A stretch of DNA of 64,000 nt from Saccharolobus islandicus REY15A. Lineage in GTDB: Archaea; Thermoproteota; Thermoprotei_A; Sulfolobales; Sulfolobaceae. The stretch's first letter is position 1. Each line of letters begins with the position of its first letter. The notes below the pieces were generated by a model. The model was not told the DNA's origin. It worked only from the letters and a program-made list of their open reading frames with translations, and ran no database searches. This document shows positions 14,981 to 61,997 of this stretch, one piece after another. A program made the position numbers and the translations under genes. The stretch is taken from assembly GCF_000189555.1 (NCBI RefSeq), contig NC_017276.1, one strand, 5' to 3'.

Positions 14981-14992
14981 GACTATTTGCCC

Positions 14993-15770: not shown

Positions 15771-15780
15771 AACTTTCCGA

Positions 15781-42504: not shown

Positions 42505-43689
42505 ATGGAATGGAAGATAAGGATTAAGGAGGTAATCGAAAAGATCGCTACGGTAAAGAAGAGGATGCCAGAGGTTAGGGTAGATAACGATGGAAACCCA
42601 GAACATGAAATTGAGGAGAGAATAATGACGATAGAGCTACTTAGTGAAAAGGTAAAGCCAGAAGTCTACCCCTTGGACTACTTTAAGTACGATAGTAATA
42701 AGAGAATTGCCTCCTTAGATTCCTCCTCTAGGTATTTAAGGGACCACTCCGTCAACACTTGTCTTGTAGGATTGTCAATTTACAGTAATAAAAAGGGGTT
42801 CATGGACGGTCCATATACAATAAATACTCCCTACATGGGGATAAGTAGCTATGAGGACATCTTAAAGGCAATTAACATCAATGACAATTACATCAGGACT
42901 AAGAACGTCATAGGCTACTATTACGTGAATGAACCCAGAAACGAGTACAAAATAGACGACATAGCTGATGAGATCAGAACTGAGGCAGAAAATATAGGTT
43001 TGAAAGAGGTAATTGACGATCATGATATAGTAATAGTTGACGGCCCCATTTATCCAACACCGCTAGAGTTAACTGAGGAATTGGAAGTCATAACTGAGGC
43101 TAGAAGGAAGCACAAAATCGCGTATGCGAAGCTTGTGAACGATAGGATAAAAGCTCTAAACGACAAAGTCATTGGAGTAGTTAAGAGGTTGGAGAACTCC
43201 AAGAAGCTCGTAAATGAGAAGAAGATCACCGAATTGTTGGGAATAGAGAACAGAAACATTAAGGATAATACTGTATTGGAATTAATAGATGAAAAAGTGT
43301 GTAGAAAGAGTAATTACCCATATATTTGCATTATAGGCCCCTTCAAGATAGAATACGCAATACAAGTTGAGGAGGAGAACGGAAGTAAGGTTATTGAAAA
43401 GGTTCCACCTAAATACGCCTATTACGTTATAATGAGAAGACCCTATTTTCCTCCTAGCTTTTTGAGGATAGAAAGTATAAGTGATAAAATGGACTTATCC
43501 CCAGTTCTCTCAAGAATAACTGAGAACAACCTATTACCAACTTACATTGAGATCGTGGATAAAAGGAGTAAGAGGATATCAGCTTCCCTCTTCACTTACG
43601 CTTATGAAATCGCGTCAAATAACTTGAATATAATTCACGACGATAAGATGACCTACGCTAACGTTTTCCAGCAATTCCTAACTAGTTAA
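42505..43689 (+). CDS. NurA-domain nuclease (accessory paralog 1)
   Basis: IASLDSSS and IVIVDGPIYP acidic motifs, IGVVKRL. Confidence 0.8.
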   Translation: MEWKIRIKEVIEKIATVKKRMPEVRVDNDGNPEHEIEERIMTIELLSEKVKPEVYPLDYFKYDSNKRIASLDSSSRYLRDHSVNTCLVGLSIYSNKKGFMDGPYTINTPYMGISSYEDILKAININDNYIRTKNVIGYYYVNEPRNEYKIDDIADEIRTEAENIGLKEVIDDHDIVIVDGPIYPTPLELTEELEVITEARRKHKIAYAKLVNDRIKALNDKVIGVVKRLENSKKLVNEKKITELLGIENRNIKDNTVLELIDEKVCRKSNYPYICIIGPFKIEYAIQVEEENGSKVIEKVPPKYAYYVIMRRPYFPPSFLRIESISDKMDLSPVLSRITENNLLPTYIEIVDKRSKRISASLFTYAYEIASNNLNIIHDDKMTYANVFQQFLTS

Positions 43690-43731
43690 AAGTTGCAGTA
43701 AGAGTTTTAGCTTTCACCTTCTATACAACCC

Positions 43732-45537
43732 TTAACTAGTCAAAATGGTCTTTATCGGTATTTCGCTGAAGTTAATTGAATACACAATACCTAACCCTGG
43801 AATTGCGTGTTTTAGGAAATCCTCGTACTCCTCTAATCCTATTCTCCTCAACACGTGACTTTCATTCCTCATCACCACTTTAGTATTGGCTAACTGTAAA
43901 ACTAGTGGATTCAGATCCTCTGGAACGTGGGTAGCTAACACAACACCCATATTCCTTACTCTACCTAACCTCATTACCTTATTTATCAACCCCTCAACTA
44001 TATCCTTTGACACGTTCTCAGAGTCAGTCTGCGGAAAATACTCGTGAGCTTCATCCATAATTATTAACGATAGTTTAGTGTCTTGCTTTTTCTTATACAG
44101 TTCATCTTTCCAAGCGAAGAAGTCTTCCAATACCTTATAAGCAATAGTTGCGACGGCCTCGATTGAAGCTGATCTCTCCATAACCCAGCTCAAGTCCACA
44201 ACCACGTCGTCATTTGGTATCTTATCAAGTCTGAAATCAACTGTCCCTGGGACTGTGAATATCCCATAACTATCGTATGCCTTCAATGTCCTAACTATAA
44301 CGTCTTGCGTTGAATAGGCCAACTCAAGTTCCTTCATTACACTACGTAACATCTTACCCATGTGGAAAGTTAACGTCCTAGTCTTGGGATCATAGGCAAC
44401 TTCATCCTTGCTAAAATTTGAACTAATGCTAATGCCACTTAAAGTAACGCTTATATTACCTATAAGTTTCCCCGGAGTTAGATTATCCCTTAATATGGAT
44501 GCGATCTCGTAATCTGTCAATCCCCTATTGATCTTATCCTTTAATGAGTACCTAATCTTATCTAGCAATTCGTCAATAATGGCCTCCCAGTACATGGAAG
44601 CTCTAGCAGTAAAGTAAGGGGTTATCTTATTGAAGTTCCTTAGATTATCGTAAAAGTTTATGGAATAGGGAACTACGAAAACGTCGTGATTGTTACACCT
44701 AACAAATGCCCCGTAACCGTTTACTACGTTAATGGTGTTAGGGTCGCATCCATACCAGTTGGCGAAATCCTCAACGTGGTCTTGAATTGAAACCTTACTA
44801 TTGGGTTCTTCAACGACTGGCATTAAAACGGAGAAGTCTTTCCTATCCTTTAAGAAATTAACGAAGTCCCCTTGCCTATCGAATATCAAAGTACTCTTTT
44901 CAATGTCTTGGCTGGAAATTATCGTCTTAAGTAAAGTGGTCTTACCGGATCCAGTTGTGCCTAAAATTAAGGTGTGATGCCTTAAGGCGTATTGGTCAAG
45001 TTTAACCTCAGCCTCAATCTCCTCTCCCCCAGAAAATATTTTCCCAATCACGATACCCTTTTCTGGAATCCTCAAAATTCTCTTGATTAAATTAGGGTTT
45101 GGGATGAACACTGGACTTTGAGGGTCGATGGGTGAAACAGCTGGCCTAATCTTATCTCCTTCCATTTCCGCAATTGGTCTCAAGGCTATGTAAGTGGTTG
45201 TAATAATGGTAGAGGGATCCCTAGGGTAAGTTAATTCTCTTATTCCCAGTCTAGATAAGGCGTCAGCTCTACTAATGGAGTAAACTTGCCCAAGCATTAT
45301 GATTGGTTTTATGATACTCCTTATAGCTAGGTATTGACCCCTCTTTATATCGCTGTTCTGATAATTATCGAAAAGTACGTCAACTCCTACTAACTCGTTC
45401 TCGTTAACGGTAACTGTCTCATACCTAGTCACCCTTCCGATTATTGTTCCGTATTTACTTGCCTCATTCTCGGCATCATCGAGCTTTTTCCTTAGTTCAT
45501 CAATAACGTTTTCTAAATTCCTTTCCTCTGATGACAT
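43732..45537 (-). CDS. HerA/FtsK-like ATPase (accessory paralog 1)
   Basis: N-terminal barrel, [38 protein letters not shown]. Confidence 0.85.
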
Positions 45538-45771
45538 AAATATAAGGTTGAAAAATAGAAATTAAAATTTTACTCGAGTTGAAAACGCTTTACCTTCTCG
45601 TCGCTGGTGTATCAAAGTAGGAACCATACCTTACTAGAAGGTATTTGAAAATCTCATAATAGTCCTTTCTAATCCAATACCTAAAGAAGTTCATAACGTT
45701 ATCCTCAATCTCAACTTCAACGTTATTCCTCAAAACGTAAATGTCAAAAATTGATAGGCTAACACTTTTAA

Positions 45772-46092
45772 CTTAATTAGGGGTTAAGGGGGCGAAAGTC
45801 CCCTTCCGTAAGGTAGGGGATGAATAGCCCCCTTATAGAAACCTTTTTATTGCAAAAAATAGATAATTCTTAGGCCTCGGCTGTAAGAGCTGGGCCGTAC
45901 CCTTGGGACTGGGGGAACTTACGCCTGTGGAGAGCAACCCTCCGTAACCCCTCTTCCACACGGGGCATTACAGAACGGTTCCGTTCGATGGAACCTCCGC
46001 TGTGGGTGAAGGGGGATCGAGGTTGCTCTGAGAAGCAGGAAATCCCCATCGTGAGGTGGAGATGCCCTGTCCGTAAGGGCAGGGTAGTTCAC
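45772..46092 (+). mobile_element. SMN1-type MITE, copy 2, 321 bp
   Basis: Appears identical to copy 1; preceded by TTTAA (45767-45771). Confidence 0.9.
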
Positions 46093-46380
46093 TAATACAC
46101 AGTTTAGTGATAGTGACTAAAAATAAAAGGTTAAAGTGTATTTTAGAAATAAAATGGATTTTCTTTAGAACTATAAGATCTTTACAGAATGATATAATAT
46201 TGGGGTTATTATACACTATAGTCCTACAACTTAAAGCCTCGCACTTTACGGAGTTGAGGTTCCAATTCCCGTAATATGAGCAATGTGGAGCCTAGTTTTG
46301 CTGATAATAGCATATAAGGCGGGATACAACGTTCTTGAAGTATTAAAAAGGATACCTGCGCCACCACCAATACCTCCTCC

Positions 46381-47592
46381 CTAACTTCCTTTAGCCACCT
46401 CCAATAGTACTCTTCCCAACGCTTTTATTGAATCCAATAAATCTTTAACGTAAACGAACTCATCTGTAGAATGTGCTAACTCAATCCTACCCGGACCGTA
46501 ATTAATACTCTTTATCCCCTCACTTACGGTAAACCTAATATCGAAAGTCCCTGCAGATAAAACAACATTGGGATCAACTCCCCTAACCTCCCTTATAGCC
46601 TTTCTCAGAGCATCTATTAGTCTCCCATCCTCACTTACTACAGTATCGACAGCGTAAAACTCATCGTAATCAAACTTAACGCCAGTCTCACTACTCACAT
46701 CCCTTAACAACCGTAAAATGCTCTCCCTAACCTCATCAATCCTCTCCTCTGGGATTAATCTCCTAACTATACTGAACTCACAGTAGTCTGCTACAGTGTT
46801 AACCCACGTACCACACTTAACAGTACCAACTAATATTGACGGTTTCTTACCAGCCTCTGGTACAATGTTGTACTTTGAGGTAATGTTGGATAAAGACGAG
46901 TAAAGTCTTTCAATCATAATCGCTACAGCCTTAACTGCGTCAATTCCTAATTGAGGAAAACCTCCATGACTTTTCTTCCCATATATTTTAACCACAGCCC
47001 AGATTGCACCCCTATGACCATTGCAAATGTTATCTGGTCCAGTAGGTTCTGTGAATATTACGTAATCGGCGTTCTTCTTGTAAATTTCCCTTAAACAATA
47101 AGTACCAGCATTTTTATTGCCTACAGTCTCCTCATCTGGGACAATGGTCTGGATGATTTTCACGTTAGAGGGGAGTAGTTTAGCTCTCTTCAACATTTCA
47201 ACAGCGTAAATTTGTGCAACTATTCCAGACTTCATGTCAGAAGCTCCTCTTCCGTAAACCTTGCCATCTTTTTCAATCCCCTCATAAGGGTTAATACTCC
47301 ATCCCTCACCGGCGGGAACAACATCGTAATGTCCATTAAACGCAATCCTTACGTTGCCATTACCCAAATAACCTACTAGATTTGGTCTATTGCCATTTCC
47401 GAACCTGACAAACTCTTTATTACCCTCAATAATTTCCGTTTTATACCCAAACTCTTCTAATTTATCCCTCAACACGCTAATTATCTTATCGTAATTTAAG
47501 CCGGGAGGATTCTCAGTTGGGATCCTTATTAACTGCTTTAAGAACTCCACAATTTCATCCTTAGAGGCTTCAACGATCTCATCTAATATCAT
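46381..47592 (-). CDS. M20-family metallopeptidase/amidohydrolase (ArgE/DapE-like)
   Basis: FNGHYDVVP, GRGASDMK, DEET, NYGPG...AH. Confidence 0.9.
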   Translation of the reverse strand: MILDEIVEASKDEIVEFLKQLIRIPTENPPGLNYDKIISVLRDKLEEFGYKTEIIEGNKEFVRFGNGNRPNLVGYLGNGNVRIAFNGHYDVVPAGEGWSINPYEGIEKDGKVYGRGASDMKSGIVAQIYAVEMLKRAKLLPSNVKIIQTIVPDEETVGNKNAGTYCLREIYKKNADYVIFTEPTGPDNICNGHRGAIWAVVKIYGKKSHGGFPQLGIDAVKAVAIMIERLYSSLSNITSKYNIVPEAGKKPSILVGTVKCGTWVNTVADYCEFSIVRRLIPEERIDEVRESILRLLRDVSSETGVKFDYDEFYAVDTVVSEDGRLIDALRKAIREVRGVDPNVVLSAGTFDIRFTVSEGIKSINYGPGRIELAHSTDEFVYVKDLLDSIKALGRVLLEVAKGS

Positions 47593-47779
47593 ATGTTTAT
47601 ATAAAAGGCAAGGATGTATTTAAACTATGTTAAGTGCTTTCTCCTATTCACTTCGCAGTGTACGAGATGAGGGATAAAATAGAGATATTCCTTCATAAGT
47701 TATAGAAAGTGTTTCCTTCTGGATATAGGAAATTCGACTACCCTATAAGTTAAATATAAGTTAAGCAATAAAATTATTA

Positions 47780-49072
47780 ATGGTTTATGGCTTAAATAAA
47801 CAACAATGGTTGGCAATATTCTCTACTTGGCTAGGATGGTTAATGGACGGATACACTAGTATAGCCTACGCATTAGTTGGAGTTATAATATCAAAAATAT
47901 TTTTCCCCTCCTCAATTGGAATTTTAGGTCTCATAGCTACTTTTGGAGGATTCGCAGTTGGTGCATTAGCAAGGCCAATAGGATCTCTAGTGTTTGGAAA
48001 CTATATAGGGGATAAGATGGGTAGAAGAAATATGCTAGTTATAACTATCTTAGGATTTTCGTTGTTGGCTTCTTCAAAATCGCTCTTACCGTCATATGAG
48101 GCTGTAGGTATTTTAGCGCCGATACTCCTATACGTCATATTATTTGCAGAGGGAATGTTTGCCGGGGCCGAATATGGAGGTGGAACAACACTGGCTCTAG
48201 AGTCTGTTCCAGCAGAGAGGAGAGCATTCATAGGCTCATTTGTGCAAAGTGGTTTCGGAACGGGATATTTCATCATCTCTCTAGTTTATTCTTTGTTATA
48301 TAGCATTTATGGGAGTAGCGGTTTCCAGCAAATAGGTTGGAGAGTACTCTTTGCTACTTGTATAATTCCAGGGTTAATAACATTAATTATTAGGAGGATA
48401 ACTGACGAAAGTCCAATATTTAAGGAAATGGAAAGTAAAAGAGAAGTAGTAAAAATACCGATTAAGAACCTCTTTGCGTCATCCTACTCATCAGTGCTAA
48501 TCGGACTAATGATAACCAGCGGGTTATTGTACATTAATACTGCTACATTCTCTTTCTATCCCTCAGTTCTAACACTCGAAAATATCCCAGGATCGTTAGT
48601 GGGTATAAGCGTTGCTATAATCAACCTAATATCGTTATTTGGAGTGTGGATAGGTGGGTTTATAGCGGATAAGATTAAGAGGGGAAGAAAGTTCCCAATG
48701 CTATTGTATTCAATAATCTTCGTAGCCCTAATATATCCAATACTTTATCTAGGACTCTCAAAAAGCTTCTCTTTGGCAACATCAGTGTTCAGTATACAAG
48801 CCTTCTTGGAAGCGATGATATTCTCAACACTACCAGCGTTTCTTGCAGAACAATTCAGTAAAAAGTACAGGACTACTGGAGTGGGTTTTACGTATAATGG
48901 AGGAGCCATAGCCGGGGGATTTGCAATTTCAGCAATATTTGCTTTATCAACATCCCTAGGATTACTTTACGCTTGGTTCCTTAACATGATCATAGCAGGG
49001 ATAATAATGATAATTGGCATAGTCCTTGCGAAAGAGACTTATAGTGGAAAACAAGACCCTATAATTGAGTGA
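47780..49072 (+). CDS. MFS transporter (metabolite:H+ symporter type)
   Basis: ARPIGSLVFGNYIGDKMGRR, GAEYGGG. Confidence 0.9.
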   Translation: MVYGLNKQQWLAIFSTWLGWLMDGYTSIAYALVGVIISKIFFPSSIGILGLIATFGGFAVGALARPIGSLVFGNYIGDKMGRRNMLVITILGFSLLASSKSLLPSYEAVGILAPILLYVILFAEGMFAGAEYGGGTTLALESVPAERRAFIGSFVQSGFGTGYFIISLVYSLLYSIYGSSGFQQIGWRVLFATCIIPGLITLIIRRITDESPIFKEMESKREVVKIPIKNLFASSYSSVLIGLMITSGLLYINTATFSFYPSVLTLENIPGSLVGISVAIINLISLFGVWIGGFIADKIKRGRKFPMLLYSIIFVALIYPILYLGLSKSFSLATSVFSIQAFLEAMIFSTLPAFLAEQFSKKYRTTGVGFTYNGGAIAGGFAISAIFALSTSLGLLYAWFLNMIIAGIIMIIGIVLAKETYSGKQDPIIE

Positions 49073-49938
49073 GGTGTTTTATTGAAATGAGAATAGGAAT
49101 AGAGGGAATTAAGGTTGGAGGGTACACAGACGAAAAGGCAAAATCTGGAGCGACGGTAATATTAGTTGAAGAACAAAACAATACTGTAGGGATTTCACAG
49201 AGGGGAGGATCACCAGCAACAATAGGGACCGACTTGTTAAGGCCTAGACATAGGGGAAATCAAACAGTTAACGCCATAGTATTAACCGGAAGGAGTGTCT
49301 TTGGACTTAGAGTAGTAGATGCGGTAATTACTAAGTTATTTGAATTGAAAATAGGATATAAAATAGGAGAGGATCTGAGAATACCAATCGTTGCCTCGGC
49401 TTCAATATTCGACTTTTACGACAACACAATATTACCAACATCAGAATGGGGATATAGGGCTATGGAAAACCTCTCAAAGGAGATACCAATAGGGAAGTAT
49501 TGGGCAGGGAGGGGTGCAACGGTAGGGAAATTGAAAGGGATTAAGTACGCTAAACCATCTGGTCAAGGCTATTACGAAATAGAAAATGATAATCTGAGCG
49601 TGGGAGTAATTTCAGTAGTAAATAGTATAGGCAATATATACGACGAAAGTGGAAGACTAGTAGCGGGAGAGGAAAGTGAGGAGTTTATCGTAAACAATGT
49701 ATTGGGAACTACATTGGGAGTTGTAATAACTAACGCTAAGTTAACAAATTCAGACGCTTGCAGGGTTGCTAGTAGTGCAGAAAACGGTTTTGCCTCTGTA
49801 ATTAGGCCTTATAATTTATCCTTAGATGGGGATACTGTATTCACTATTTCCACTAACCAAATTGAAACGTCAGTAGATAAAGTAATCTTTTTAGCCTACG
49901 AAGCTTCTAGAAAATCTGTGCTTTCAATATTTAGGTGA
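49069..49938 (+). CDS. P1/DmpA-like (S58) aminopeptidase
   Basis: RGGSPAT, AIVLTGRSVFGL, GRGATV, TTLGVVITNA, DGDTVF. Confidence 0.8.
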   Translation: MRCFIEMRIGIEGIKVGGYTDEKAKSGATVILVEEQNNTVGISQRGGSPATIGTDLLRPRHRGNQTVNAIVLTGRSVFGLRVVDAVITKLFELKIGYKIGEDLRIPIVASASIFDFYDNTILPTSEWGYRAMENLSKEIPIGKYWAGRGATVGKLKGIKYAKPSGQGYYEIENDNLSVGVISVVNSIGNIYDESGRLVAGEESEEFIVNNVLGTTLGVVITNAKLTNSDACRVASSAENGFASVIRPYNLSLDGDTVFTISTNQIETSVDKVIFLAYEASRKSVLSIFR

Positions 49939-49944
49939 GGAAAA

Positions 49945-50703
49945 ATGAGCTCAGAACTCTTTTCAGTAAAAGGAAAAGGTGCAGTTGTAATAGGAGCTGG
50001 GAGTGGAATAGGAAAGGCAATAGCGGAACTATTCAACAACTTAGGAGGAAAGGTTATGGCAAGTGATATGAAAGGATTAGAGGAATTAAGTAAGATAGTG
50101 AATACGTTTAGGGCGGATATAACTAACGTTAATGAGGTAAGAGATCTTGTTAAGTTTAGCCTGGAAAAATTAGGTGAAATAAACGCTCTATACGTAACTC
50201 CATCAATTAACGTTAGGAAAAGGATAGAGAATTACACCTATGAGGAATTCGATAAGGTTGTAAACTTGAACCTTAAGGGCACATTCATAGTGTTAAAGGA
50301 ATTCCTTCCGGTAATGAAGAAGATTGGAGGTAGCGTTGTCTTATTCTCGTCAATAAGAGGTAAAGTTACAGAGCCCGGCCAATCTGCATATGCCGCAACT
50401 AAGGCTGCTATAGAACAGTTAGCTAAAACTGCAGCTGCTGAGTATGGAAAATACGGTATAAGGGTTAATGTAATTGCTCCGGGTATTGTTGATACTCCAT
50501 TTACTCAACAAATAAAGAACGATCCAGAATGGTATAGGGCTTACACGGAAAAGACGATATTAAAGAGATGGGCCACGCCAATGGAGATTGCCAGTGTCGC
50601 AGTATTTTTAGCTATGCCCGCTTCATCTTACATCACTGGTACGGTAATCTACGTAGATGGGGGATGGACTGCAATAGATGGGAGATATGAACCAAATGTC
50701 TGA
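49945..50703 (+). CDS. Short-chain dehydrogenase/reductase
   Basis: GAGSGIG, YAATK, IRVNVIAPG. Confidence 0.9.
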   Translation: MSSELFSVKGKGAVVIGAGSGIGKAIAELFNNLGGKVMASDMKGLEELSKIVNTFRADITNVNEVRDLVKFSLEKLGEINALYVTPSINVRKRIENYTYEEFDKVVNLNLKGTFIVLKEFLPVMKKIGGSVVLFSSIRGKVTEPGQSAYAATKAAIEQLAKTAAAEYGKYGIRVNVIAPGIVDTPFTQQIKNDPEWYRAYTEKTILKRWATPMEIASVAVFLAMPASSYITGTVIYVDGGWTAIDGRYEPNV

Positions 50704-50812
50704 ACTTTATGCATGCTTTCCTTCTCTCCCATTTATTTTAGAGCATATAGTAATTATATAGAAATAAAGGATAAAAGGGAAATGATATAATAGTAACTAA
50801 AGGAGATTTTAA

Positions 50813-50853
50813 CTTTACGGGGGTTAAGGGGGCGAAAGACCCCTTCCGTGAGC
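50813..50853 (+). mobile_element. Isolated left end of an IS200/IS605-family element
   Basis: TTTAA followed by CTTTACGGGGGTTAAGGGGGCGAAAGACCCCTTCCGTGAG, then cut by the next IS. Confidence 0.75.
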
Positions 50854-52029
50854 GGTAGACCCAAAATCACCTCCTCAAAAATAAATCTATAGTGTAAATA
50901 AGCGTTTCAATTACATTAAATGTAAAATTCTCTGGATTGAATAAATCAGGAAATAAAAGAATTAATAATAATCTAAACTCCTCTCTCCCCACCTCCCCCT
51001 TGAATATGGTATATAAGGAGTAGAGTACAAGGGCCAGCACGAAGATCAACGTGCGGAAAACAAACTTAGTAGAACTAGTAAATGGAAGAAAAGCCTTAAT
51101 GTTCCTATAAGAGGTCTCTATGGGACCTCTTACCTTATTGTACAAATCCAACACTTCCCTCTTGGATAGGTCTAGGTTAGTAGCCCTAGCGAAGTAAACA
51201 AGACTCTTCTTCTTTCTCCCCACTTTTTCCTTGCTGTACACGAGAAGCCTGAACTTGACCTGCTCATCCCTCCTATGCCTCTTACTATTAGTTGTGTAAT
51301 CCCCGTCAAACTCCTCGTACACCTTCACGTCCCCAACCGGAACAGCAATTATGTATTTAAACTGTGAAATGAAGTTGAGCACGTCAACAGTATAGAAACC
51401 AGCGTCAAGAGTTATCAACCTTATCTTGAATCCCATTGCCATTACTTGTTCAACAAGAGCCTTCACTATCTCGTCCTTAGTCATACCGTTCACTTGCGGC
51501 AAGTAAAAGCACTTTCCCCTTATACTTGGTTGTTGCAGTTGCGTAGTTCCACGAGTTTCCTTTTTCAGAGCTCCCGAGCCCTTTCACTGGTTTCCCGTAC
51601 CATGTCTTGGTTGTCCAGTCTATTGAGAGATCTATCTCATTCACTCCCTTTAATATCTCCAAGGATATTTTCCTAGCTCTTTCCAATAGCTTTTCAGTCA
51701 CTTCCATCCCTTGTTTCTCTACGTAATTCCTCACGGTCTGTGGGGATACGTCATACGCTCTGGACTTGTTCTCTACTGAATCGTTCCACAAACACGCGGA
51801 GATGAGAGTTTTCGCTACCTCCTCTACCTTTTCCCCTTGGAAGTTCAACATGGAAAGTAATTTATATCCTATTTGTTGAATATTATTTTGGTGAGGGAGA
51901 CCTGGTGTTACCATCTTCCTATGTCACGTGGTAATACGCCATCTCCCTCACCTTAAACCCTTTCTTCAATTGAATTCTTTATACTCTTATAAATTTCTTT
52001 ATCTTTTATAAATTCGATATTATCCTACC
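50854..52029 (-). mobile_element. ISH3-family element (ISC1200/ISC1225 type) with frameshifted transposase
   Basis: ORFs 51477-51914 (IDWTTK) and 50867-51502 (LDAGFY, RGPIETSYR) are two halves of one DDE transposase; short GGTAG inverted termini. Confidence 0.8.
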
Positions 52030-52059
52030 AGAAATATTTTTTCTAATATGATTTTGGGT

Positions 52060-52257
52060 CTACCGTATAAAGGAAGGTTCTACAACAAATTCTCCTTCGA
52101 ACGAAAATAGTAAAAACCTCGTGAATTTTAACTTTACTACGTTATTTTTGATACCTACTACATTAGGTAAGACTGAAATAATATTTGAGGGGTTTTTTGC
52201 CCATGCTATGATTGCATTAGACCTCTTATCTTCAATATCCATAGTTTCAATTTTCAT
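52060..52257 (-). pseudogene. Truncated SRPBCC/CoxG-like gene
   Basis: WAKNPSNIISVLPNVVG resembles the CoxG/START N-terminus; ends next to the IS. Confidence 0.45.
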
Positions 52258-53619: not shown

Positions 53620-53654
53620 ATTTCTTTTATTATTTTTGTGGTTTAAATTTGTTT

Positions 53655-54302: not shown

Positions 54303-54334
54303 AATTCAGTTTAATAAATATAAGTATAAAAGAT

Positions 54335-55489
54335 TTATGGGATATACCATGACAAGGGATATGAAGGATCATCCACCTCTTTAGCGTAATTCGTTAATTT
54401 AACTCTCCTCTGAGTTTCCACCATTACTGCAACTTCATCGTTATAACTTCCCCTTTTACTTAAACTCGACTCAACAGCTCCAGGTTGAGGACCGTGAACA
54501 TGCCCACCCCTATGTAGAGTTATATCTCCTTTTGAAATTCCCCTCCTACTCATGAACTGTCCAGAAGAGTAAAATAGTACCTCGTCTGCGTCCACGTTAT
54601 CGTGATAATAAGATATTGGGACAGAATTAGGATGGTAATCAAATAGTCTAGGAACAAAAGTACATATTACGAAATTATTAGCCGTGAAAGTAGTATATAC
54701 TGTTGGAGGCTGGTGTAACTTACCAGTAATTGGCTCTAAATCGTAAACGTTTAACGCAAATGGATAAAGATATCCATCCCATCCTATAACATCAAAGGGA
54801 TGATAGTCTAAAGTAATGGATTGGAAACCTTCAGAAGTTTTTACAACTAAGTTATAATCCCCTTTCTCATTAAACGTCTTTAAATTGGGTAATTTAATAT
54901 CCCTATTATAATAGAACGAACCCTCAATTAATTGTCCGTAATCATTTCTGTACTGTCTAGGTATTTCAACTTGCTTGCCCTCTATTACGAGTAATTCAGA
55001 ATATCTCTTAAAATTAAACGTATAAGTAGTCCCCCTGGGAATAACTAAATAATCTCCCTGCACTAATTCTATGCTTCCGAAAACACTCCTAAATTCAGCT
55101 TCTCCCTCTTGAATGTAATAAACTTCATCGAAATCAGCATTCCTATAAAATAATTTACTCTCCCCCTCATCCACCTTCGCGTAAGATATGATAACGTCCT
55201 CATTAAAAATTAGTGGAATCCTATCTAAAAATACATCATTAGACTTCCTCAATTTACTCGTGGAAAGCTTATGATGTCTATATCCAGCGTTATTCCATTC
55301 CTCAATTAAATTATTTCTCCATTCTCCAACCTTAGCTATTCTAGTTGGAGGGTTTAAGTGATAAAGGAGGGAATATCTACCACTAAATCCATTTAAACCA
55401 AACACTTCCTCCCTTAACAACAAATTATCCTTCATGAAAATCGTATGCCTCTTCTTTGGAACTTCACCTTGCCTATAATAGAATGCCAT
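54335..55489 (-). CDS. hmgA: Homogentisate 1,2-dioxygenase family
   Basis: FYRNADFDE, HPFDVIGWDG, HQPPTVY, YYHDNVDADE and HGP iron-ligand motifs. Confidence 0.85.
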   Translation of the reverse strand: MAFYYRQGEVPKKRHTIFMKDNLLLREEVFGLNGFSGRYSLLYHLNPPTRIAKVGEWRNNLIEEWNNAGYRHHKLSTSKLRKSNDVFLDRIPLIFNEDVIISYAKVDEGESKLFYRNADFDEVYYIQEGEAEFRSVFGSIELVQGDYLVIPRGTTYTFNFKRYSELLVIEGKQVEIPRQYRNDYGQLIEGSFYYNRDIKLPNLKTFNEKGDYNLVVKTSEGFQSITLDYHPFDVIGWDGYLYPFALNVYDLEPITGKLHQPPTVYTTFTANNFVICTFVPRLFDYHPNSVPISYYHDNVDADEVLFYSSGQFMSRRGISKGDITLHRGGHVHGPQPGAVESSLSKRGSYNDEVAVMVETQRRVKLTNYAKEVDDPSYPLSWYIP

Positions 55490-55552
55490 AATATAATCTT
55501 TTAACCTAAGTATTTAAGTATATAATCGAAACCTTTCTATGAAACATTTATT

Positions 55553-56602
55553 TTGATATACTTAAAAATAAATGTGATGGATAAAATAAAACCAGAGTTA
55601 TTTTGGGTTGTAGATCATTACCCAGATTCGGGTATTTCAAAGGGAGAATATTACGAACAAATAGCTAGGGAAGTGGAGTATGCTGAAAAATTAGGATACA
55701 GAGGAGTCTGGATAGCAGAACATCACTTCATAGATTACGGAATAGTCCCATCAGCCCCAATATACTTAACATATTTAGCGAGTAGAACTAGCAGAATAAG
55801 ATTAGGACCGGCAGTCTCTACAATAGTGTTCAGAAATCCCATACAAGTAGCTGAAGAATATTCGTTATTAGACACTCTCTCTAAGGGAAGATTAAATTTA
55901 GCAGTAGGTAGCGGGTATTTAAAACATGAATTCGAAGGTTTTAACGTCCCTCTTGAGGCTAAAAGGGAAATATTCGATGAAGCCCTAGACATAATCATTA
56001 AACTAATGAGAGGTGAGAAGATTACTGTTAACGGGAAGTATTTTAAATACGAAAATATAGGAATAAACGTATTACCAATGCAAAAACCTCATCCCCCCAT
56101 ATGGATAGCAGTACTTAGAGCTGAGGCTGCCTACCATGTAGGAAAGAGGGGATTTAACCTAATGATGATACCATATGCCACAGTAGATAAGATCGATGAT
56201 ATAATGCCAGTTGTAAATTCCTTTAGAGAAGGTCTTAAAGAGAGTAGAAACGAAGAAAAAGAGGTATCCCTTTCTTTCCACACACATGTAGCTAACTCAT
56301 TCCATGATGCAGTTGAGACTTCTAAAGAGTACATAAATAGATACGTATTCTCAAGACTTTACGCTAAGAGAAGAACACTTGATGAATTATATGGTAGCGG
56401 ACTATTACTATTCGGTAGTCCAGAGGATGTTGCAAATCAGATCTATAAGATATATAAGCTGGCGAGACCTAGTAGGCTCATGTTTTTAGTAGATTACGGA
56501 ATGAAACCATACGATATGGTCATTGACATTTTAACTAAAATAAGGGAGAAGGTAGCTAAACATCTAGAAGATAAAGGAATTTCATTGGATTTTGCAGATT
56601 AA
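55553..56602 (+). CDS. Luciferase-like (LLM) flavin-dependent monooxygenase
   Basis: GVWIAEHHF, RIRLGPAV, SKGRLNLAVGSG, PHPPIWIA. Confidence 0.85.
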   Translation: MIYLKINVMDKIKPELFWVVDHYPDSGISKGEYYEQIAREVEYAEKLGYRGVWIAEHHFIDYGIVPSAPIYLTYLASRTSRIRLGPAVSTIVFRNPIQVAEEYSLLDTLSKGRLNLAVGSGYLKHEFEGFNVPLEAKREIFDEALDIIIKLMRGEKITVNGKYFKYENIGINVLPMQKPHPPIWIAVLRAEAAYHVGKRGFNLMMIPYATVDKIDDIMPVVNSFREGLKESRNEEKEVSLSFHTHVANSFHDAVETSKEYINRYVFSRLYAKRRTLDELYGSGLLLFGSPEDVANQIYKIYKLARPSRLMFLVDYGMKPYDMVIDILTKIREKVAKHLEDKGISLDFAD

Positions 56603-56645
56603 TAATATTAAAATTTTTTATAATAAGTTTTAATTCTCAAAAAAA

Positions 56646-57500
56646 TTAAAGTAAGGCTATGGGATTTAACGGAGATGCAGTAGCTCCACTTAATCTAAGC
56701 GGTAATACTATTAACACGAACTCCTGCCTATCCCCTAGTAACTTAACCAGCGCCTCTAAATACATATTATCTATCATAGGTATTCCGTTCTCAGCAATCA
56801 AATATCTATGAACCGGTAAGTAACTTTTACTCCCCTTTCTTACGTATTCAGTCCTTGGCGAATCACTCCCCACCAATCCAAAACCCTTACTAACTAACCA
56901 TTTAGCTGCATCTAAACCTATCCCGGGCTCTTCTTCTGCCCCATCTTTACTAAAACCAGTATATATGATAGCTGCATCCCCCTTCTCCACGTTAACCTTT
57001 AACCTCTTTTGTAAGTCTTCACTTGTAACCTCCCTTTCTAAGCCTATATCAGAAACATCGAAGAAGATAGCCCTTGTAATTATTGGCGGTATTGTGGTAA
57101 TATCCAAATCCTTATACCCATCCACATCAGCCCTCATGGTCTTTATATCAATTCCTCCGAATAGTTTACCCTTTTCAGATACGTGATTTAAGGCATCTAT
57201 ATGAGTACCAGAATGATCACACATACTTAACCTAACATTAGCAAAACCAGTTCCCTCTGGTATATCCAAATCCCTATATCTTCTTTTAGCATCATCATAA
57301 TGCAATTGCTTACTTATGTAAACTGGACCGTGAGCGAAATAATATAGACCGTTCTTTACTGTCTTTCCAAGTTCTATTATCTCGCCTTTCTGTATTAGCT
57401 TCAAAATATCTTGAATCCTCTTAACCTTATATGAACCTTCCCCTATTACCTCGTATTGAAAGAGGTTAAGAAAGTGGGTTATTACGGATTCCATTTTCAA
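56646..57500 (-). CDS. Cyclase / kynurenine formamidase family metal hydrolase
   Basis: HSGTHIDA, GDAAIIYTG, VHRYL, LPLRLSGATASP. Confidence 0.85.
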   Translation of the reverse strand: MKMESVITHFLNLFQYEVIGEGSYKVKRIQDILKLIQKGEIIELGKTVKNGLYYFAHGPVYISKQLHYDDAKRRYRDLDIPEGTGFANVRLSMCDHSGTHIDALNHVSEKGKLFGGIDIKTMRADVDGYKDLDITTIPPIITRAIFFDVSDIGLEREVTSEDLQKRLKVNVEKGDAAIIYTGFSKDGAEEEPGIGLDAAKWLVSKGFGLVGSDSPRTEYVRKGSKSYLPVHRYLIAENGIPMIDNMYLEALVKLLGDRQEFVLIVLPLRLSGATASPLNPIALL

Positions 57501-57911
57501 TCAAAGTTAAGATTGTTCACACATAATTAAAATCTTTTTTCAATATAAGTATTTATATTAAAATAAAAAATTTATCACTTTATTAATTTTATGCTTGATG
57601 ATCATTTATACTTATGCTTAGTATATCATACATGATTATGTAAAAGCACTAATATTAAGGTATAAATTTCATTATTAGTTTATAAAATATAAAGAAATCC
57701 TATTTTAAATTTCTATTATATTATTTTACTAATAAATATCGAATAAGATGAGTGCACGAGAACACGCTCTTTATACTATATATAAAAAATGATTTTATAT
57801 AAGACATATTAAAATATCAAATATAAGTTTATATTAATAATATATTTTTTAAACTTTATATAATTATTTATCTGTACTTTATTTCTAAATTTCTAAGTAT
57901 TTAATCATATA

Positions 57912-59103
57912 ATAGCAGTTGTTCTACTTTAACGCAGCTTAAAGATTTTCATCAAACCCAGAGCACCCTCTAAACGTATTTCAACGAACCGGAGAAGTTC
58001 CTCCACGCTCTTCAAGTTAAGGGACGTGACCAAGTCTCTGGCCGCGTTGACCACCATCACAAAGAGGAGCAGATAACCTTGAAGCCTCTTCCTCTTGAGG
58101 AAAGAGGAATCTTGCATACCCAAGGTCTTGACGTCCCTGTGTAACTTCTCTATCTCCCACCTAATCTTCCAAGTTGCATCTATCTCCTCATCGCTCAAGT
58201 TAAGGTCAGTGGCGTACAAGTTGAGCCTGTTATCTTTATATACCAGTATTAACAGCTTTATAGTAATAACTTGGTCTCCTAGGGTCAACTCAGCCAAGTA
58301 AGACCCTGGAGGGAGATCTCTAACGTGGGGTGCCCCTCCACCCCCAACGTCTTCCCTCCCTCCAAAGGCCTAACCCTTAGGAGCCTCCTATTAGACTTCA
58401 ATTCCGAAACTACACTACCCTTCACCAGCTTCTCCGACCAATACCAGGAGTCAAACACTACCCTCGCCACATGGAACCGCTCTTTGAGAACCTCCATAAT
58501 TTCCGCAGCCATCTCGATCTTGGTCTTGAACTCACTTACCATCCCGCTTTCCCACATCTTTCTCGTGGCGTAGGGGAAAGCTCCTATCAAATAGCTTTTC
58601 CCTGTAGATAAGTCGTATAAGGCTATTGTGAGGACTTGTATGCCAGGCTCGAGTGCGTGGAGCACCACGCGAAGTAGTTCCCGTACTTGCTTGCTCTACT
58701 CTGGAATAGAGTTTGTGGTCGAAGGTGTAGTCAATTATCACTACTACCGGTCCAATTATCACTTTGCTTAACGCTTCAAGGTAGTCTCTCCATGTGTTCT
58801 CTAAGTTCTCTAGTGCTTTTAACAAGTTGGCGTAGTTTAACCCGAACGTGATTGATGTGTTTCTAATGCTGGCCCTCTCTCCTAGCAAGGTCATGAGTGC
58901 TAAGTCTACTGCGACCTTTCTGCTTAACCCGTTCATTCTCAGTATTCCAACCAGGTAATTGAAGGACTTAATGAACTCGCTCCTTGCAATGTCTAGCTCT
59001 TTCTCGGACTTCACAGTTTTCAATCAACCAAACGTAAATCTAAAAACTTTATCGATAGTACCGTGAACTTTGTATTACCAAGGAAAAGTAGAACAACTGC
59101 TAT
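57912..59103 (-). mobile_element. ISC1217-like element, multiply frameshifted
   Basis: 18-bp inverted repeat ATAGCAGTTGTTCTACTT (57912-57929 / 59086-59103); transposase pieces 58532-59023, 58285-58668 (FDSWY) and 57929-58297 (WEIEKLHRDVK). Confidence 0.75.
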
Positions 59104-59325
59104 ACCTAATTGATAATTGTAATGATTTGGTGGAGGATTGGTTAAATCTTCACTCCTGTGAGGAATTAAGAGAATCGTGCCATTTTAATATTGAAGGGAA
59201 GAAAAGCTCCTTTATTCCAATAGATGATAAGGAGTTAATACGTTACATAGCTAAAGGGTGTGGAATCTTTTGGATAGTATGAAAAATGTTGAAACGTATA
59301 ACATATGAGATTATTGAGTACCCTC

Positions 59326-60978
59326 TTAGTATTTTTCACTCCTAAAAGCTAAGTTGTTTACTTTTATCGTGTACGAAGAGATTATTCCGAATCCCGGCGG
59401 GGAAACGCTTAGAACTTTTGAGTACTTTTCCATGCCTATCCTCTTTAATGCGTCCTCGTCTGCCCTCATTGCGACCTTTGTGTTAGTTAAAGTAAGGATT
59501 AGGTCGTTTAAATCCGTTGGCCTATGCGTTGCTAGAATTGTGCCTATTCCCCTAACCCTTCCAAGCCTCATAATCTTATTAATTAACCTCTCTAGGGGTT
59601 CCTTGTTTTCTTCCCTCTTACCTTGAGGGAAATATTCGTGAGCCTCGTCGAAGATCATTAAATACTCTGTTTCCTTACCTTCCTTCTTATAACGGTCATC
59701 TATTATCTTGAATATTTTATTAATGATGAGGAAGGAGGCAATAGTTGCCGAATCTACTCCCCTCTCTAAAGCCCACCTTAAATCAACTACCGCCTTGCTC
59801 TTCATTATTTCCTCGTAGTTAGGCTCTTGGTAATAGCCTTTGCCAAAGGATACGTCAATTATCCCGCTCTGAGAAAGTAAGTAAACAGACCTAATTATGT
59901 TGTTCTGAGTTTCCCTGTGTATCTTCATTTTCTCCATAACTTCCCTGCAGTTATCTTCCCAATCGTCAATAACGTTGTTCTTACCTACGCAATTTTCTGA
60001 AACTATCTTAAAGAACTCGCCTCCTTGAGGGCTGAAGTAAGGAGAAACGTCGGGCAACAGTTTATAATTTTCCGGCAATCTAAAGCCTAATAAGTAGAGG
60101 TTAAATGACGATTTTCCGTTACTCAGGATCAGTCTGTCACCTTCAACCTTACTTATTTTATATCCCGACAAGTTGCTCCTCTTTAGGAAGACGTCTACAA
60201 AGTCAGTAATTCCCATCTCGTAGTCCCTAGTTACTGGAACTACTATTGAGCCTCCCATTTCTACTGCAGGCTTTATGTAATCTCCTTGGATGTCGAATAC
60301 AATTAGCGGAGTATCGGAGTTCTTCATTATCACCTTCAGTAAGTTTGTTTTGCCTGCTCCCGTTGTTCCAACAACTAGGACGTGGTGTTTTAACGCTTCT
60401 TTACTCAGTTTTACGTCAACTTCGATTTCCCTATAGCCTTCAACAACTTTTCCTATCCTCACTCCTTCTTCAGGAATTCCCAACATTCCTTTAATGAAGT
60501 CCAGTGAAGGTAAGAAAACTGGGCTTTGCGGGTCGATAGGAGAGGAAGGAGGTACAACTTCTCCTTCAACCTCTTCTGAGAGCAGTTCTACTGTAATTAC
60601 GAGGGGAGTCATTAGACCGCTTACGTTCTCTTGAGGGAACAATGAAGGTACTTTTGATATTGAAAGTATGTCCTGCCTAGTAACTGCCTTAATCCTGGAT
60701 AGCATTAAAGTCCTTGAGACCGGTAAAGATATGCCTAAGTAAGAGCCTATGAGTATTCTACTGCTCAAGTAAGTGTCAAAAGATACCTCAATTTTAACTT
60801 CTCTTTCATCCTCTCCATATTCTGCAGGGTAAACTCTAGATACCATGCCTATTATTTTCCCTTTTGCCCTCTTCCTAGCTTCTTCTATTAGCTGAGATAA
60901 GGGAGCTGGCGTTTGAATTTCCTCTTCTCTTCTTTCCGCTTGTTCTCCTCTTTCCTCCATTTTACTCACTTGCATCAA
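59326..60978 (-). CDS. HerA/FtsK-like ATPase (accessory paralog 2)
   Basis: HVLVVGTTGAGKT, IFDEAHEYF, RLGRVRGIGTILATH. Confidence 0.85.
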   Translation of the reverse strand: MMQVSKMEERGEQAERREEEIQTPAPLSQLIEEARKRAKGKIIGMVSRVYPAEYGEDEREVKIEVSFDTYLSSRILIGSYLGISLPVSRTLMLSRIKAVTRQDILSISKVPSLFPQENVSGLMTPLVITVELLSEEVEGEVVPPSSPIDPQSPVFLPSLDFIKGMLGIPEEGVRIGKVVEGYREIEVDVKLSKEALKHHVLVVGTTGAGKTNLLKVIMKNSDTPLIVFDIQGDYIKPAVEMGGSIVVPVTRDYEMGITDFVDVFLKRSNLSGYKISKVEGDRLILSNGKSSFNLYLLGFRLPENYKLLPDVSPYFSPQGGEFFKIVSENCVGKNNVIDDWEDNCREVMEKMKIHRETQNNIIRSVYLLSQSGIIDVSFGKGYYQEPNYEEIMKSKAVVDLRWALERGVDSATIASFLIINKIFKIIDDRYKKEGKETEYLMIFDEAHEYFPQGKREENKEPLERLINKIMRLGRVRGIGTILATHRPTDLNDLILTLTNTKVAMRADEDALKRIGMEKYSKVLSVSPPGFGIISSYTIKVNNLAFRSEKY

Positions 60979-61975
60979 GTTCTGCAGTTCTCAAGCTTTC
61001 CCAATCTTCGTAATTTACTCCAGTAGTAACTCTGGCTATGTTGAAGGCGAAAATAAAAGCTGAGGCGCTTAGTCTCTTTGATATCCTATCGGCAACTTCT
61101 ATGAATTCTGGTATACCGCGGTAGGACGAGTATTCTCTTGCGGTGTAAACTCCTTTGCAAAGTAAATCCTTGGATAGGCTTTCAACTCTGAATACTCCTT
61201 CCCTTACTTTAACGTAAACCATGTACCTAGTGTAATTCTTTCCTCCAATGTCAACTTCTTCCCTGAACACTGGAGTAGTGTAGAAATCTTTCCCTCTTCC
61301 TAAGTATTCAACTATTACGTCGTCTGTGGCGTTCATTAACTTGGGGTCTTTTACTAACTCTGACCTCCTTAATTTTCTACTGTAATTTAACCTCTTTACT
61401 ATTCCTATTAACTTGTCCTTCTTGCGTTGGTTTGCCAACGAGATAAAAGCAGATCTGTAAGGTTCTCCTACCATTTGTATGTAAGGCCCGGGGATTATTG
61501 GGCCGTCAACTATCGTCACGAAGTTTGATTTACTTATTGCGTAATTTTCCAGTGAGATCCTCAGCTCATCTAATATGTTATCGTCTTTATAATCCGGCGA
61601 GTAAGGTTCTCCGTTGACGTTGTTTATTGCGACTATCTTGGAAAGGGTTTGGTCTCCTTCAATTAATTTCCTAACTTCTTCTGAGGCTTTTATCGCCATG
61701 AAAGGAACTTCTACCATGAGGGGGATCATTAAATTTTCAGTAACTAAATTTGCGTAAAGCGATGCGAAATAAATGTTAGCCCCTTTAACGTTAATCATCC
61801 TGGAGGAGGAGTCTAGGAATGAGAAAGTAGTCAAGCTCTCGCATTCTCCTAATTCGTCTTCTACTTCAACTGGCGTTGAATCTTCTATGCTTGATGCAGG
61901 AGTGACCCCTAAATAAGGTTGATCGAGTGAGGTGAGTAAGCTGAAGAGTGACTTTATTGCTTCTCCGAATTCCAT
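60962..61975 (-). CDS. NurA-domain nuclease (accessory paralog 2)
   Basis: FSFLDSSS, TIVDGPIIP, IGIVKRL; overlaps the herA start. Confidence 0.8.
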   Translation of the reverse strand: MEFGEAIKSLFSLLTSLDQPYLGVTPASSIEDSTPVEVEDELGECESLTTFSFLDSSSRMINVKGANIYFASLYANLVTENLMIPLMVEVPFMAIKASEEVRKLIEGDQTLSKIVAINNVNGEPYSPDYKDDNILDELRISLENYAISKSNFVTIVDGPIIPGPYIQMVGEPYRSAFISLANQRKKDKLIGIVKRLNYSRKLRRSELVKDPKLMNATDDVIVEYLGRGKDFYTTPVFREEVDIGGKNYTRYMVYVKVREGVFRVESLSKDLLCKGVYTAREYSSYRGIPEFIEVADRISKRLSASAFIFAFNIARVTTGVNYEDWESLRTAELDASE

Positions 61976-61997
61976 AATTCTTAAGATGATTTGTATA

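Follow-up and report, generated by a model that had tools for sequence, protein, structure and literature searches.

What do two pairs of nuclease and ATPase genes, nurA1-herA1 (pair 1) and nurA2-herA2 (pair 2), contribute to Saccharolobus islandicus REY15A, on whose chromosome they lie 14 kb apart? We examined them in a 64-kb stretch of that chromosome (the window; CP002425.1, 496001–560000, in genome orientation), the numbering of which is used below unless genome positions are named. An earlier note on this DNA had pointed to two NurA-like and two HerA-like proteins and had taken them for one stand-alone, duplicated, possibly heteromeric antiviral module. Its four open reading frames (ORFs) proved real and intact and carry the motifs that it quoted. 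In pair 1 the genes converge: nurA1 (42505-43689, + strand) encodes 394 amino acids (aa) with a Pfam NurA domain (PF09376; E = 4e-28) and has orthologs of 373 to 412 aa across the Sulfolobaceae, while herA1 (43732-45537, − strand) encodes 601 aa with a DUF87/HerA central domain (E = 4e-12), and 42 bp (43690-43731) lie between the two 3′ ends. Pair 2 is a nurA2→herA2 operon on the − strand, in which nurA2 (60962-61975; 337 aa; NurA, E = 1.3e-17) comes first and the TTG start of herA2 (59326-60978; 550 aa; DUF87, E = 1.5e-12; HerA_C, E = 1e-8) overlaps its end by 17 nucleotides (nt). The pairs do resemble each other, as the note had said, at 33 to 41% identity between HerA1 and HerA2 (E = 6e-44 and 7e-40) and 30% between NurA1 and NurA2 (E = 1e-21). 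Our results indicate that both are members of a small Thermoproteota clade allied to known NurA–HerA pairs that are associated with CRISPR, and on balance we favor two independent systems for DNA processing linked to CRISPR or other defense.

The evolutionary histories of the nuclease and of the ATPase run in parallel. In a tree of 58 HerA sequences, with nurA-herA pairs of Desulfurococcales and Acidilobales as the outgroup, the HerA1 and HerA2 types each formed a clade (support, 100 for both), the two clades were sisters (97), and a Thermoproteales/Pyrobaculum group came next. The NurA tree mirrors this topology (NurA1 type, 96; NurA2 type, 100; sisters at 88). The matching trees suggest that nuclease and ATPase genes were duplicated together in an ancestor within the Sulfolobales, and since they mirror each other, each NurA and its neighboring HerA are likely cognate partners, which speaks against a recent duplication and against an obligate mixed complex. 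Pairs 1 and 2 thus appear to be two ancient sister lineages, each NurA co-evolving with its own HerA. In every examined locus with a full-length HerA match, nurA was adjacent to herA; this and the other statements on synteny rest on about 20 loci and are not a census, a scan of a genome collection having given at least 17 loci, of which 13 could be used. Six or more genomes have both types, namely, those of REY15A, Saccharolobus A20, A. infernus, A. sulfidivorans, Acidianus HS-5, and Stygiolobus. Among the matches listed, S. solfataricus (P2) and S. shibatae have the pair-1 type only and Metallosphaera the pair-2 type only.

Neither pair appears to be the core HerA-NurA of double-strand break repair, a point on which the note was right. 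Against the core HerA equivalog models NF040819 and NF040937, HerA1 scored 36.7 and 34.1 bits and HerA2 scored 60.7 and 43.0 bits, with cut-offs of 970 and 800; these scores are read without a positive control, the HerA-like proteins of ~500 aa having peaked at 250 bits versus the cut-off of 800. In the window we found neither mre11 nor rad50, no cas genes or CRISPR arrays, and no tRNA genes, and no Mre11 or Rad50 domain was found in its ORFs of at least 110 aa or in the 24 kb past its right end. The core operon herA-mre11-rad50-nurA (SiRe_0061-0064) lies elsewhere in the REY15A genome, and its herA and nurA are essential in this strain (PMC4351679). Since they are essential despite the presence of paralogs in the genome, the paralogs presumably do not replace them. 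In fold, as in their catalytic and ATPase motifs, the core proteins agree with the window pairs (S. solfataricus, 4D2I and 2YGK; Thermococcus kodakarensis, 9X1L-9X1P, PMC12977600), and by analogy the window pairs presumably share the core architecture of a HerA ring and a NurA dimer that process DNA ends at the expense of ATP. They differ in sequence, the window HerA reaching a phmmer E value of only 1e-12 with T. kodakarensis HerA and 1e-6 with S. solfataricus HerA, and in distribution, the core being essential and universal in thermophilic archaea whereas the window pairs are clade restricted. Searched exhaustively with phmmer, 1.84 billion representative proteins yielded 63 clusters at E ≤ 1e-30 and 138 at the looser limit of E ≤ 1e-10, which makes the clade a small one.

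For all four proteins the top PADLOC models were PDLC01055 and PDLC01056 ("HerA/NurA, type III coevolved"), which go back to two clusters, 57 and 58, in the survey by Shah et al. (PMC6546367); a kinship with CRISPR-linked NurA and HerA is thus supported. HerA1 scored 166 bits and HerA2 199.5 bits with PDLC01055, the next distinct HerA model giving ~60 bits, and the two NurA proteins scored 48 and 67 bits with PDLC01056. PADLOC supplies no curated cut-off for either model. In our calibration, a Thermoproteales pair linked to a CARF gene (L017) scored 493 bits (HerA, PDLC01055) and 201 bits (NurA, PDLC01056); pairs from P. ferrireducens, Desulfurococcales, and Acidilobales gave 138 to 200 bits with PDLC01055 and from no match to 51 bits with PDLC01056; and unrelated HerA-like controls gave 66 to 96 bits with PDLC01055, with other models first and this one eleventh. 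Such intermediate scores suggest that the window proteins are relatives, rather than clear members, of the CRISPR-co-evolved family. Models for antiphage HerA proteins (NF042943 and NF042944) gave only 22 to 43 bits versus cut-offs of 800 to 850, and those for the DNA import ATPases CedB (NF041017) and CedD (NF053655) gave 28 to 42 bits versus 600 to 700.

Next to the two Sulfolobales clades in relationship stand the Thermoproteales pairs known as "Cas HerA/Cas NurA" (PMC3396285; PMC3973734, Vestergaard et al. 2014; PMC6546367, Shah et al. 2019). Bernick et al. described a nurA-csm6-herA arrangement in Pyrobaculum and relatives, with at least three paralogous pairs per genome and parallel trees, and proposed a role in adaptation (PMC3396285). 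Like these, the window pairs are two-gene units of NurA and HerA with parallel phylogenies, occur as several paralogous pairs per genome, and belong to a group repeatedly linked with CRISPR arrays and CARF genes (csm6/csx1). Unlike them, the REY15A pairs have no abutting CARF gene, the nearest cas gene being 18 kb away, pair 1 is convergent, and the Sulfolobales lineage is itself split into two clades.

The two lineages seem to have been transmitted in different ways. In blastn comparisons, REY15A and A. infernus share 85% nucleotide identity over exactly 59326-62015 and REY15A and Stygiolobus share 77% over 59330-62019, the flanks being unrelated in both cases. The unit common to the genera (59326-62015, − strand; 2.69 kb) consists of herA2, nurA2, and ~40 bp upstream. 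At the protein level, S. islandicus REY15A and A. infernus are 89% identical in HerA2 and 88% in NurA2, compared with 56% in HerA1 and 53% in NurA1; with Stygiolobus the values are 79% for HerA2 and 39% for HerA1. Since high identity is confined to the cassette and ends sharply, pair 2 was probably exchanged between genera, and these alignments portray it as a 2.7-kb operon that passes from one genus to another as a self-contained cassette. Among the matches listed, the clusters at ≥90% include, as named S. islandicus strains, only REY15A, HVE10/4, and LAL14/1, plus Acidianus. Neither pair is marked by foreign base composition, a candidate sign of acquisition that we rejected (GC, 0.38 to 0.41 versus 0.377 ± 0.019 in other ORFs).

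In REY15A, pair 2 stands at the end of a defense island that extends past the right end of the window and consists of a Cmr-β cassette, an Hma-type system, an ABC transporter, and vapBC. The order on the pair-2 strand is Cmr-β, Hma, genes for a 423-aa and a 519-aa protein, ABC ATPase and permease, a DEAD-box fragment, vapBC, a 93-aa ORF, and nurA2-herA2, with a PaREP1 gene on the opposite strand between Cmr-β and Hma. The type III-B Cmr-β cassette (genome 576001-584194, pair-2 strand; L008:370-8563) contains cmr7, cmr4, cmr5, cmr1, cmr6, cmr2/cas10, and cmr3 and corresponds to SiRe_0597–0603, in agreement with PMC7480081. It begins 16 kb past the window, cmr3-β lying 18.0 kb from the nurA2 start. 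The Hma-type system (genome 565396-574563, pair-2 strand; L004:844-10011) has genes for a 933-aa methylase (DUF1156), a 1,098-aa ATPase (DUF499), and an 895-aa SNF2 helicase and, within the block, a 131-aa ORF; it lies 5 to 14.6 kb past the window, with its helicase ~7.4 kb from the nurA2 start. After it come the 423-aa protein, which is weakly like beta-CASP nucleases of the RNase J family, and the 519-aa zinc-finger protein, which has no match in the defense databases. The vapBC genes (62627-63222, − strand) encode a PIN toxin (62627-62986; E = 1.8e-6) and an antitoxin of the ribbon-helix-helix, CcdA-like type (62983-63222; CcdA, E = 4.9e-8), and the 51-aa DEAD-box fragment (~63439-63594, − strand) is their neighbor. 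PADLOC matches to "mad8" (MADS) were rejected as generic P-loop similarity, the ABC ATPase matching the same model.

Links to CRISPR recur at other loci of the family. In A. infernus (L035:6651-18424), the pair-2 cassette lies 1.3 kb downstream of cas6 and 1.3 kb upstream of a CRISPR array of ~43 repeats with a 24-nt repeat, CTTTCAGTTCTTCCTTATTTCAAC, and a period of 58 to 59 nt (L035 12915-15430); cas1 and cas2 come after the array, and the edge of this locus holds a RAMP gene. In a Thermoproteales metagenome-assembled genome (MAG), nurA-herA has a CARF gene immediately upstream, reproducing the nurA-csm6-herA arrangement of Bernick et al. (PMC3396285). Among the 148 neighbors at the 13 more distant loci, Cas4-like genes were found three times and CARF/Csm6-like genes twice, and the frequent neighbor families included no genes of effector complexes. 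The earlier description of the pairs as standing alone, without cas genes, therefore holds inside the window but not beyond it, given the position of Cmr-β, the A. infernus ortholog in a CRISPR-Cas locus, and the CARF genes that abut nurA in a Thermoproteales genome and, as described next, in S. tokodaii. A defense neighborhood is supported for pair 2 (Cmr-β, Hma, and vapBC); for pair 1, the context lends weak support to a putative antiviral role.

Pair 1 presents a different picture. Its genes lie tail to tail in seven of seven crown-group genomes examined, from about four genera, with 3′ ends that are separated by 42 bp in REY15A and 2 bp in Saccharolobus A20 and that overlap by 14 nt in S. 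solfataricus P2 and A. brierleyi, by 53 nt in S. tokodaii, and by ~56 nt in both A. hospitalis and A. ambivalens. The exception is a MAG of a basal member of the Sulfolobaceae, where herA→nurA share a strand. The conserved convergent layout is unusual for presumed subunits of one complex, and an antisense interplay at the nurA1 and herA1 3′ ends is possible. The flanking genes are unrelated between genomes and mostly metabolic, and in the HerA tree the HerA1/NurA1 clade follows taxonomy, so that pair 1 appears to have been inherited vertically in the Sulfolobaceae, at varying chromosomal sites. No CRISPR neighbors of pair 1 were found within the window. In S. tokodaii, csx1 (CARF plus HEPN, 417 aa; L037:4710-5963) lies 37 bp upstream of the nurA1 ortholog on the same strand, an arrangement not found in the other pair-1 loci examined. 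The pair-1 locus of S. solfataricus has a Schlafen-like helicase and an AAA_5 ATPase nearby.

Both pairs look enzymatically competent, judging from the conserved acidic residues of the NurA proteins and the intact motifs of the HerA proteins. NurA1 and NurA2 scored 98.9 and 64.6 bits with Pfam PF09376 (cut-off, 21) and share the motifs LDSSS and (I/T)IVDGP. In an alignment of 19 NurA sequences that includes both, D55, E143, D157 (in VDGP), and D296 (NurA2 numbering) are invariant, and we infer that these are the published catalytic residues of NurA. Both HerA proteins scored 47 to 48.5 bits with DUF87 (PF01935; cut-off, 23.2), and with HerA_C (PF05872; cut-off, 22) HerA2 reached 34.6 bits and HerA1, marginally under, 21.8. 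They contain GTTGSGKT or GTTGAGKT, DEAHEYF, and RLGRVR; the Walker A motif is at residue 193 in HerA1 (GTTGSGKT) and 204 in HerA2, the Walker B DEAH at 495 and 444, and RLGR at 523 and 471, respectively. AlphaFold (AF2) models of HerA2 and NurA2 were built on family alignments. The HerA2 model (predicted local distance difference test [pLDDT] score, 86) combines a beta-rich N-terminal domain with a P-loop core, and in Foldseek searches core HerA, SIR2-linked HerA, DUF4297-linked HerA, and TdpA all matched it at E values of ~1e-21 to 1e-19. Since it matches every solved kind of HerA alike, the fold confirms the superfamily and cannot assign a subfamily. The NurA2 model (pLDDT, 88.3) had 12 PDB matches at E ≤ 0.001, all of them NurA or NurA-like (S. 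solfataricus 2ygk, TM1739 [1zup], and the NurA proteins of Deinococcus radiodurans, T. kodakarensis, and Pyrococcus furiosus, with 7f6d_G, 9x1l_G, and 3tai among the entries), at TM-scores of only ~0.4. A sequence search of the PDB with either NurA gave no match, and fold comparison alone recovered these structures.

Taking these observations together, we judge it somewhat probable that pairs 1 and 2 are two independent, cognate NurA–HerA systems for DNA processing linked to CRISPR or other defense. Both would belong to a Thermoproteota-restricted NurA–HerA superclade that is distinct from the core linked to Mre11-Rad50 and that includes the CRISPR-associated (csm6/CARF-linked) pairs of Thermoproteales. 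An ancestor within the Sulfolobales would have duplicated the whole pair, giving rise to the two sister lineages, of which pair 2 would tend to land in or near CRISPR-Cas and other defense loci. By analogy with the core complex, the HerA ring ATPase may thread double-stranded DNA into a bound NurA dimer, and the dimer, as its family suggests, would degrade or resect linear DNA from the end. Such processing or destruction of DNA might be tied to CRISPR-Cas immunity or to defense more generally, either by degrading invaders or by supplying fragments. Context, from which this role is inferred, supports it moderately for pair 2 and weakly for pair 1.

Several observations weigh against a link to CRISPR or defense. 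No cas genes were found within 10 kb of the pair-2 type in Stygiolobus, Metallosphaera, or P. ferrireducens, nor within 6 to 10 kb of pair-1 loci, S. tokodaii excepted, or of most Desulfurococcales and Acidilobales loci; the comparison of loci, a check that the note had proposed for other Sulfolobales, turned up some linked to cas or CARF genes and a majority without cas genes, so that the family does not always sit in cas loci. In REY15A itself, 18 kb and two other systems lie between pair 2 and Cmr-β, which makes their co-function a matter of guilt by association. The window proteins reach only ~40% (HerA) or at most one-third (NurA) of the score of a bona fide member of the type III-coevolved family, and no CARF or other sensor domain was found in the NurA and HerA proteins of either pair. 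The vertical inheritance of pair 1 among metabolic genes looks housekeeping-like. In a transcriptome of cells overexpressing csa3b, in which cmr genes were up, no SiRe_058x gene (the presumed range of pair 2) changed, and SiRe_0566 ("conserved hypothetical protein"), which by the count of ORFs between the anchors SiRe_0561 and SiRe_0571 would be herA1 or nurA1, was down ~3-fold (156 versus 465; log2, −1.57) while cmr-β was up. Finally, CRISPR-associated NurA–HerA pairs have figured in comparative-genomics surveys since 2012, and in the literature searched we found no experimental function for them, no functional data for either pair or any member of the clade, and no mention of the presumed locus tags SiRe_0578-0583.

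The main rival is housekeeping DNA processing, especially for pair 1. In its general form, which we consider unlikely but a serious contender, the pairs are a back-up or specialized apparatus for cellular DNA repair, recombination, or fork processing, resecting ends under stress with no role in immunity. The vertical descent of pair 1 across the Sulfolobaceae, usually among metabolic genes, would fit such a role, as would the conserved housekeeping neighborhoods of the Desulfurococcales and Acidilobales relatives, the NCBI name of the NurA proteins ("DNA double-strand break repair nuclease"), and the response of other nurA and herA paralogs of REY15A to regulators of DNA damage genes (PMC5587795). 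However, with these paralogs in the genome the core genes are still essential, so that the paralogs offer no substitution; pair 2 has a patchy distribution, is exchanged horizontally, and recurs next to genes of CRISPR or defense; in two lineages nurA has a CARF or csx1 gene as its direct neighbor; and the best-matching profiles are those of CRISPR-co-evolved families.

A narrower role within immunity strikes us as rather improbable, namely, that the pairs are dedicated generators of prespacers, cutting linear invader DNA into pieces for Cas1-Cas2 in the manner of RecBCD or AddAB, rather than effectors of interference or of a stand-alone defense. The A. infernus cassette does adjoin a CRISPR array with cas1 and cas2, Cas4-like genes occurred at 3 of the 13 distant loci, and a part in adaptation was suggested by Bernick et al. 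for nurA-csm6-herA (PMC3396285) and by Liu et al. for other nurA-herA genes of REY15A (PMC5587795). Yet the adaptation genes of REY15A (SiRe_0760-0763) are, by locus tag, at a distance of ~180 genes, the nearby Cmr-β is an interference cassette, cas1 and cas2 are missing from the vicinity of most family members, and the window genes are not among the repair genes activated in studies of Csa3a. We give equally little credence to a more elaborate scheme, in which the Sulfolobales pairs act in trans as the nuclease component of either type III immunity or CRISPR adaptation. Pair 2 would then be a plug-in cassette swapped by CRISPR loci, and pair 1 a fixed one whose convergent 3′ overlap lets nuclease and motor be controlled separately, each antisense to the other, until a signal (e.g., cyclic oligoadenylate, by way of a neighboring or distant CARF protein such as Csx1) unites them to shred invader DNA or to feed Cas1-Cas2.

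That the two pairs cooperate as a single stand-alone, duplicated, possibly heteromeric antiviral module, the claim with which this locus was introduced, now seems very improbable. Their location within 20 kb of each other, their similarity, and their joint presence in at least six genomes speak for it. They belong, however, to anciently split sister clades in which each NurA tracks its own HerA, and they differ in arrangement, distribution, and mode of inheritance: unrelated metabolic genes and two broken insertion sequences (ISs) lie between them; in HVE10/4 their accession numbers put ~35 genes between them; the loci of the two types are unrelated in other genomes; and, among the matches listed, few S. 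islandicus strains have pair 2 at ≥90%, and S. solfataricus P2 and Metallosphaera have one type only. Nothing ties pair 1 and pair 2 into one unit, and nothing points to their working together or in a mixed complex. ATPases of the HerA/FtsK type, such as CedB, VirB4, and TraD, serve in DNA transfer, packaging, and import. An origin of the pairs as integrated plasmid or virus genes for such functions (conjugative transfer, packaging, or DNA import) could draw on the mobility of pair 2, the IS remnant alongside it, and weak Pfam and NCBIfam similarity to the TrwB, FtsK, CedB, and CedD ATPases, but it is largely refuted and hardly credible, given scores of 18 to 42 bits with the CedB, CedD, VirB4, and TraD models versus cut-offs of 366 to 700, a partner that is always a NurA nuclease, the lack of integrase, conjugation, or capsid genes found around either pair, and the lack of close relatives in IMG/VR viral contigs (weak partial ATPase matches only), INPHARED phages, and PLSDB plasmids.

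Other systems offer partial likenesses to the two cognate NurA–HerA systems that we favor. The defense systems SIR2-HerA (Nezha) and DUF4297-HerA likewise combine a hexameric ATPase of the HerA fold with an effector in defense islands, and they match the HerA2 model in Foldseek (E, ~1e-21 to 1e-20) as strongly as core HerA does. They differ in that the window partner is NurA in every locus and in that their PADLOC models gave ~30 to 64 bits, versus 166 to 200 bits with PDLC01055. TdpAB is a defense complex of thermophiles in which an ATPase ring and a nuclease degrade DNA. It gave the best TM-score with the HerA2 model among HerA-like structures (PDB 8WFD/8WET; 0.60 to 0.61; root mean square deviation, ~7 Å), at a sequence identity of 14 to 15%; its nuclease chain is not among the structural matches of NurA2, and no phosphorothioation genes lie near either pair. 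The REY15A genome holds further noncore paralogs, SiRe_0094/0095 (SiL_0094/0095), SiRe_0014 (NurA), and SiRe_1857 (HerA), ~470 to 490 genes away by locus tag. The promoter of SiRe_0094/0095 is bound by Csa3a, with a role in spacer acquisition proposed (PMC5587795), and it carries a ccr-2 box (PMC9976892). None of these paralogs is among the 134 HerA2 relatives listed, and they are probably more distant from the window pairs.

Considering that REY15A is a leading genetic and biochemical model for archaeal CRISPR (type I-A, Cmr-α, and Cmr-β) and holds intact representatives of both sister clades, one a mobile cassette near Cmr-β and Hma and the other a conserved chromosomal pair, the question of whether NurA–HerA pairs serve defense, spacer supply, or repair is directly testable in this strain. 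In addition to correcting the picture of a single duplicated module, our analysis points to a duplication of the whole pair within the Sulfolobales, an exchange of the pair-2 cassette, and a convergent arrangement of pair 1.

The immediate neighbors of the pairs include several remnants. The archaeal ATPase, vapBC, and helicase remnant that had been listed as neighbors are real, the ATPase being truncated and the DEAD-box fragment only 51 aa long. The truncated AAA_14-type "archaeal ATPase" (41684-42463, + strand) lies 41 bp upstream of nurA1, matches a 388-aa Metallosphaera AAA_14 ATPase (E = 1e-103), and corresponds to its C-terminal two-thirds, the P-loop part being missing; its other matches are weak ones to winged helix-turn-helix domains. 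Weak matches to the helix-turn-helix of Csa3/CasR had suggested a Csa3-like regulator upstream of nurA1, a candidate that was rejected since the ORF is this ATPase remnant. No counterpart of the remnant was seen at the same position in the other pair-1 loci. A 92-aa ORF (41328-41606, − strand) with a Walker B-like "VIDEFQ" segment appears to be a second AAA_14/"archaeal ATPase" remnant, and the position of the two remnants on opposite strands suggests a local rearrangement just upstream of nurA1.

Just upstream of nurA2, the 93-aa ORF (61998-62279, − strand) has no Pfam, PADLOC, or NCBIfam match. It was found in S. islandicus loci only, not beside the Acidianus, Stygiolobus, or Metallosphaera cassettes, and was rejected as a third component; being specific to S. 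islandicus, it probably lies outside the system. About 300 bp downstream of herA2 is a degenerate IS of the ISC1217 family (57929-59023, − strand) with its transposase split in three frames, three separate ORFs matching positions 2-106, 120-217, and 233-327 of the DDE_Tnp_2 profile. In Stygiolobus azoricus (L033:1-8449), the pair-2 cassette adjoins Fer4, NarJ-like, radical-SAM, and AAA_14-DUF4143 genes, and the same Pfam families occur at 6833-17694 of the REY15A window, ~42 kb from pair 2. This likeness may be the trace of an older common location, or it may be a coincidence.

Between herA1 and herA2 lie genes for an M20 peptidase, an MFS transporter, an S58 peptidase, and an SDR protein, then a broken IS (50867-51914) whose DDE_Tnp_1/DUF4322 transposase is split in two, followed by genes for an MBL hydrolase, an HTH_10 regulator, a homogentisate-dioxygenase-like protein, a luciferase-like oxidoreductase, and a cyclase, and finally the broken ISC1217. 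The two broken ISs bracket a block of aromatic-catabolism-like genes of lower GC content (0.30 to 0.35; 52.8 to 57.5 kb). Elsewhere in the window, an IS605-type OrfB/TnpB gene (22892-24088, − strand; 398 aa) with OrfB_IS605 and Cas12f1-like TNB domains encodes a transposon nuclease and is not a cas gene. At 1689-11033, an operon for a molybdopterin oxidoreductase encodes a catalytic subunit with a twin-arginine translocation signal, a Fer4 subunit, an NrfD membrane subunit, a second Fer4 protein, and a NarJ-like chaperone, and it is followed by a gene for a NorB/COX1-like oxidase.

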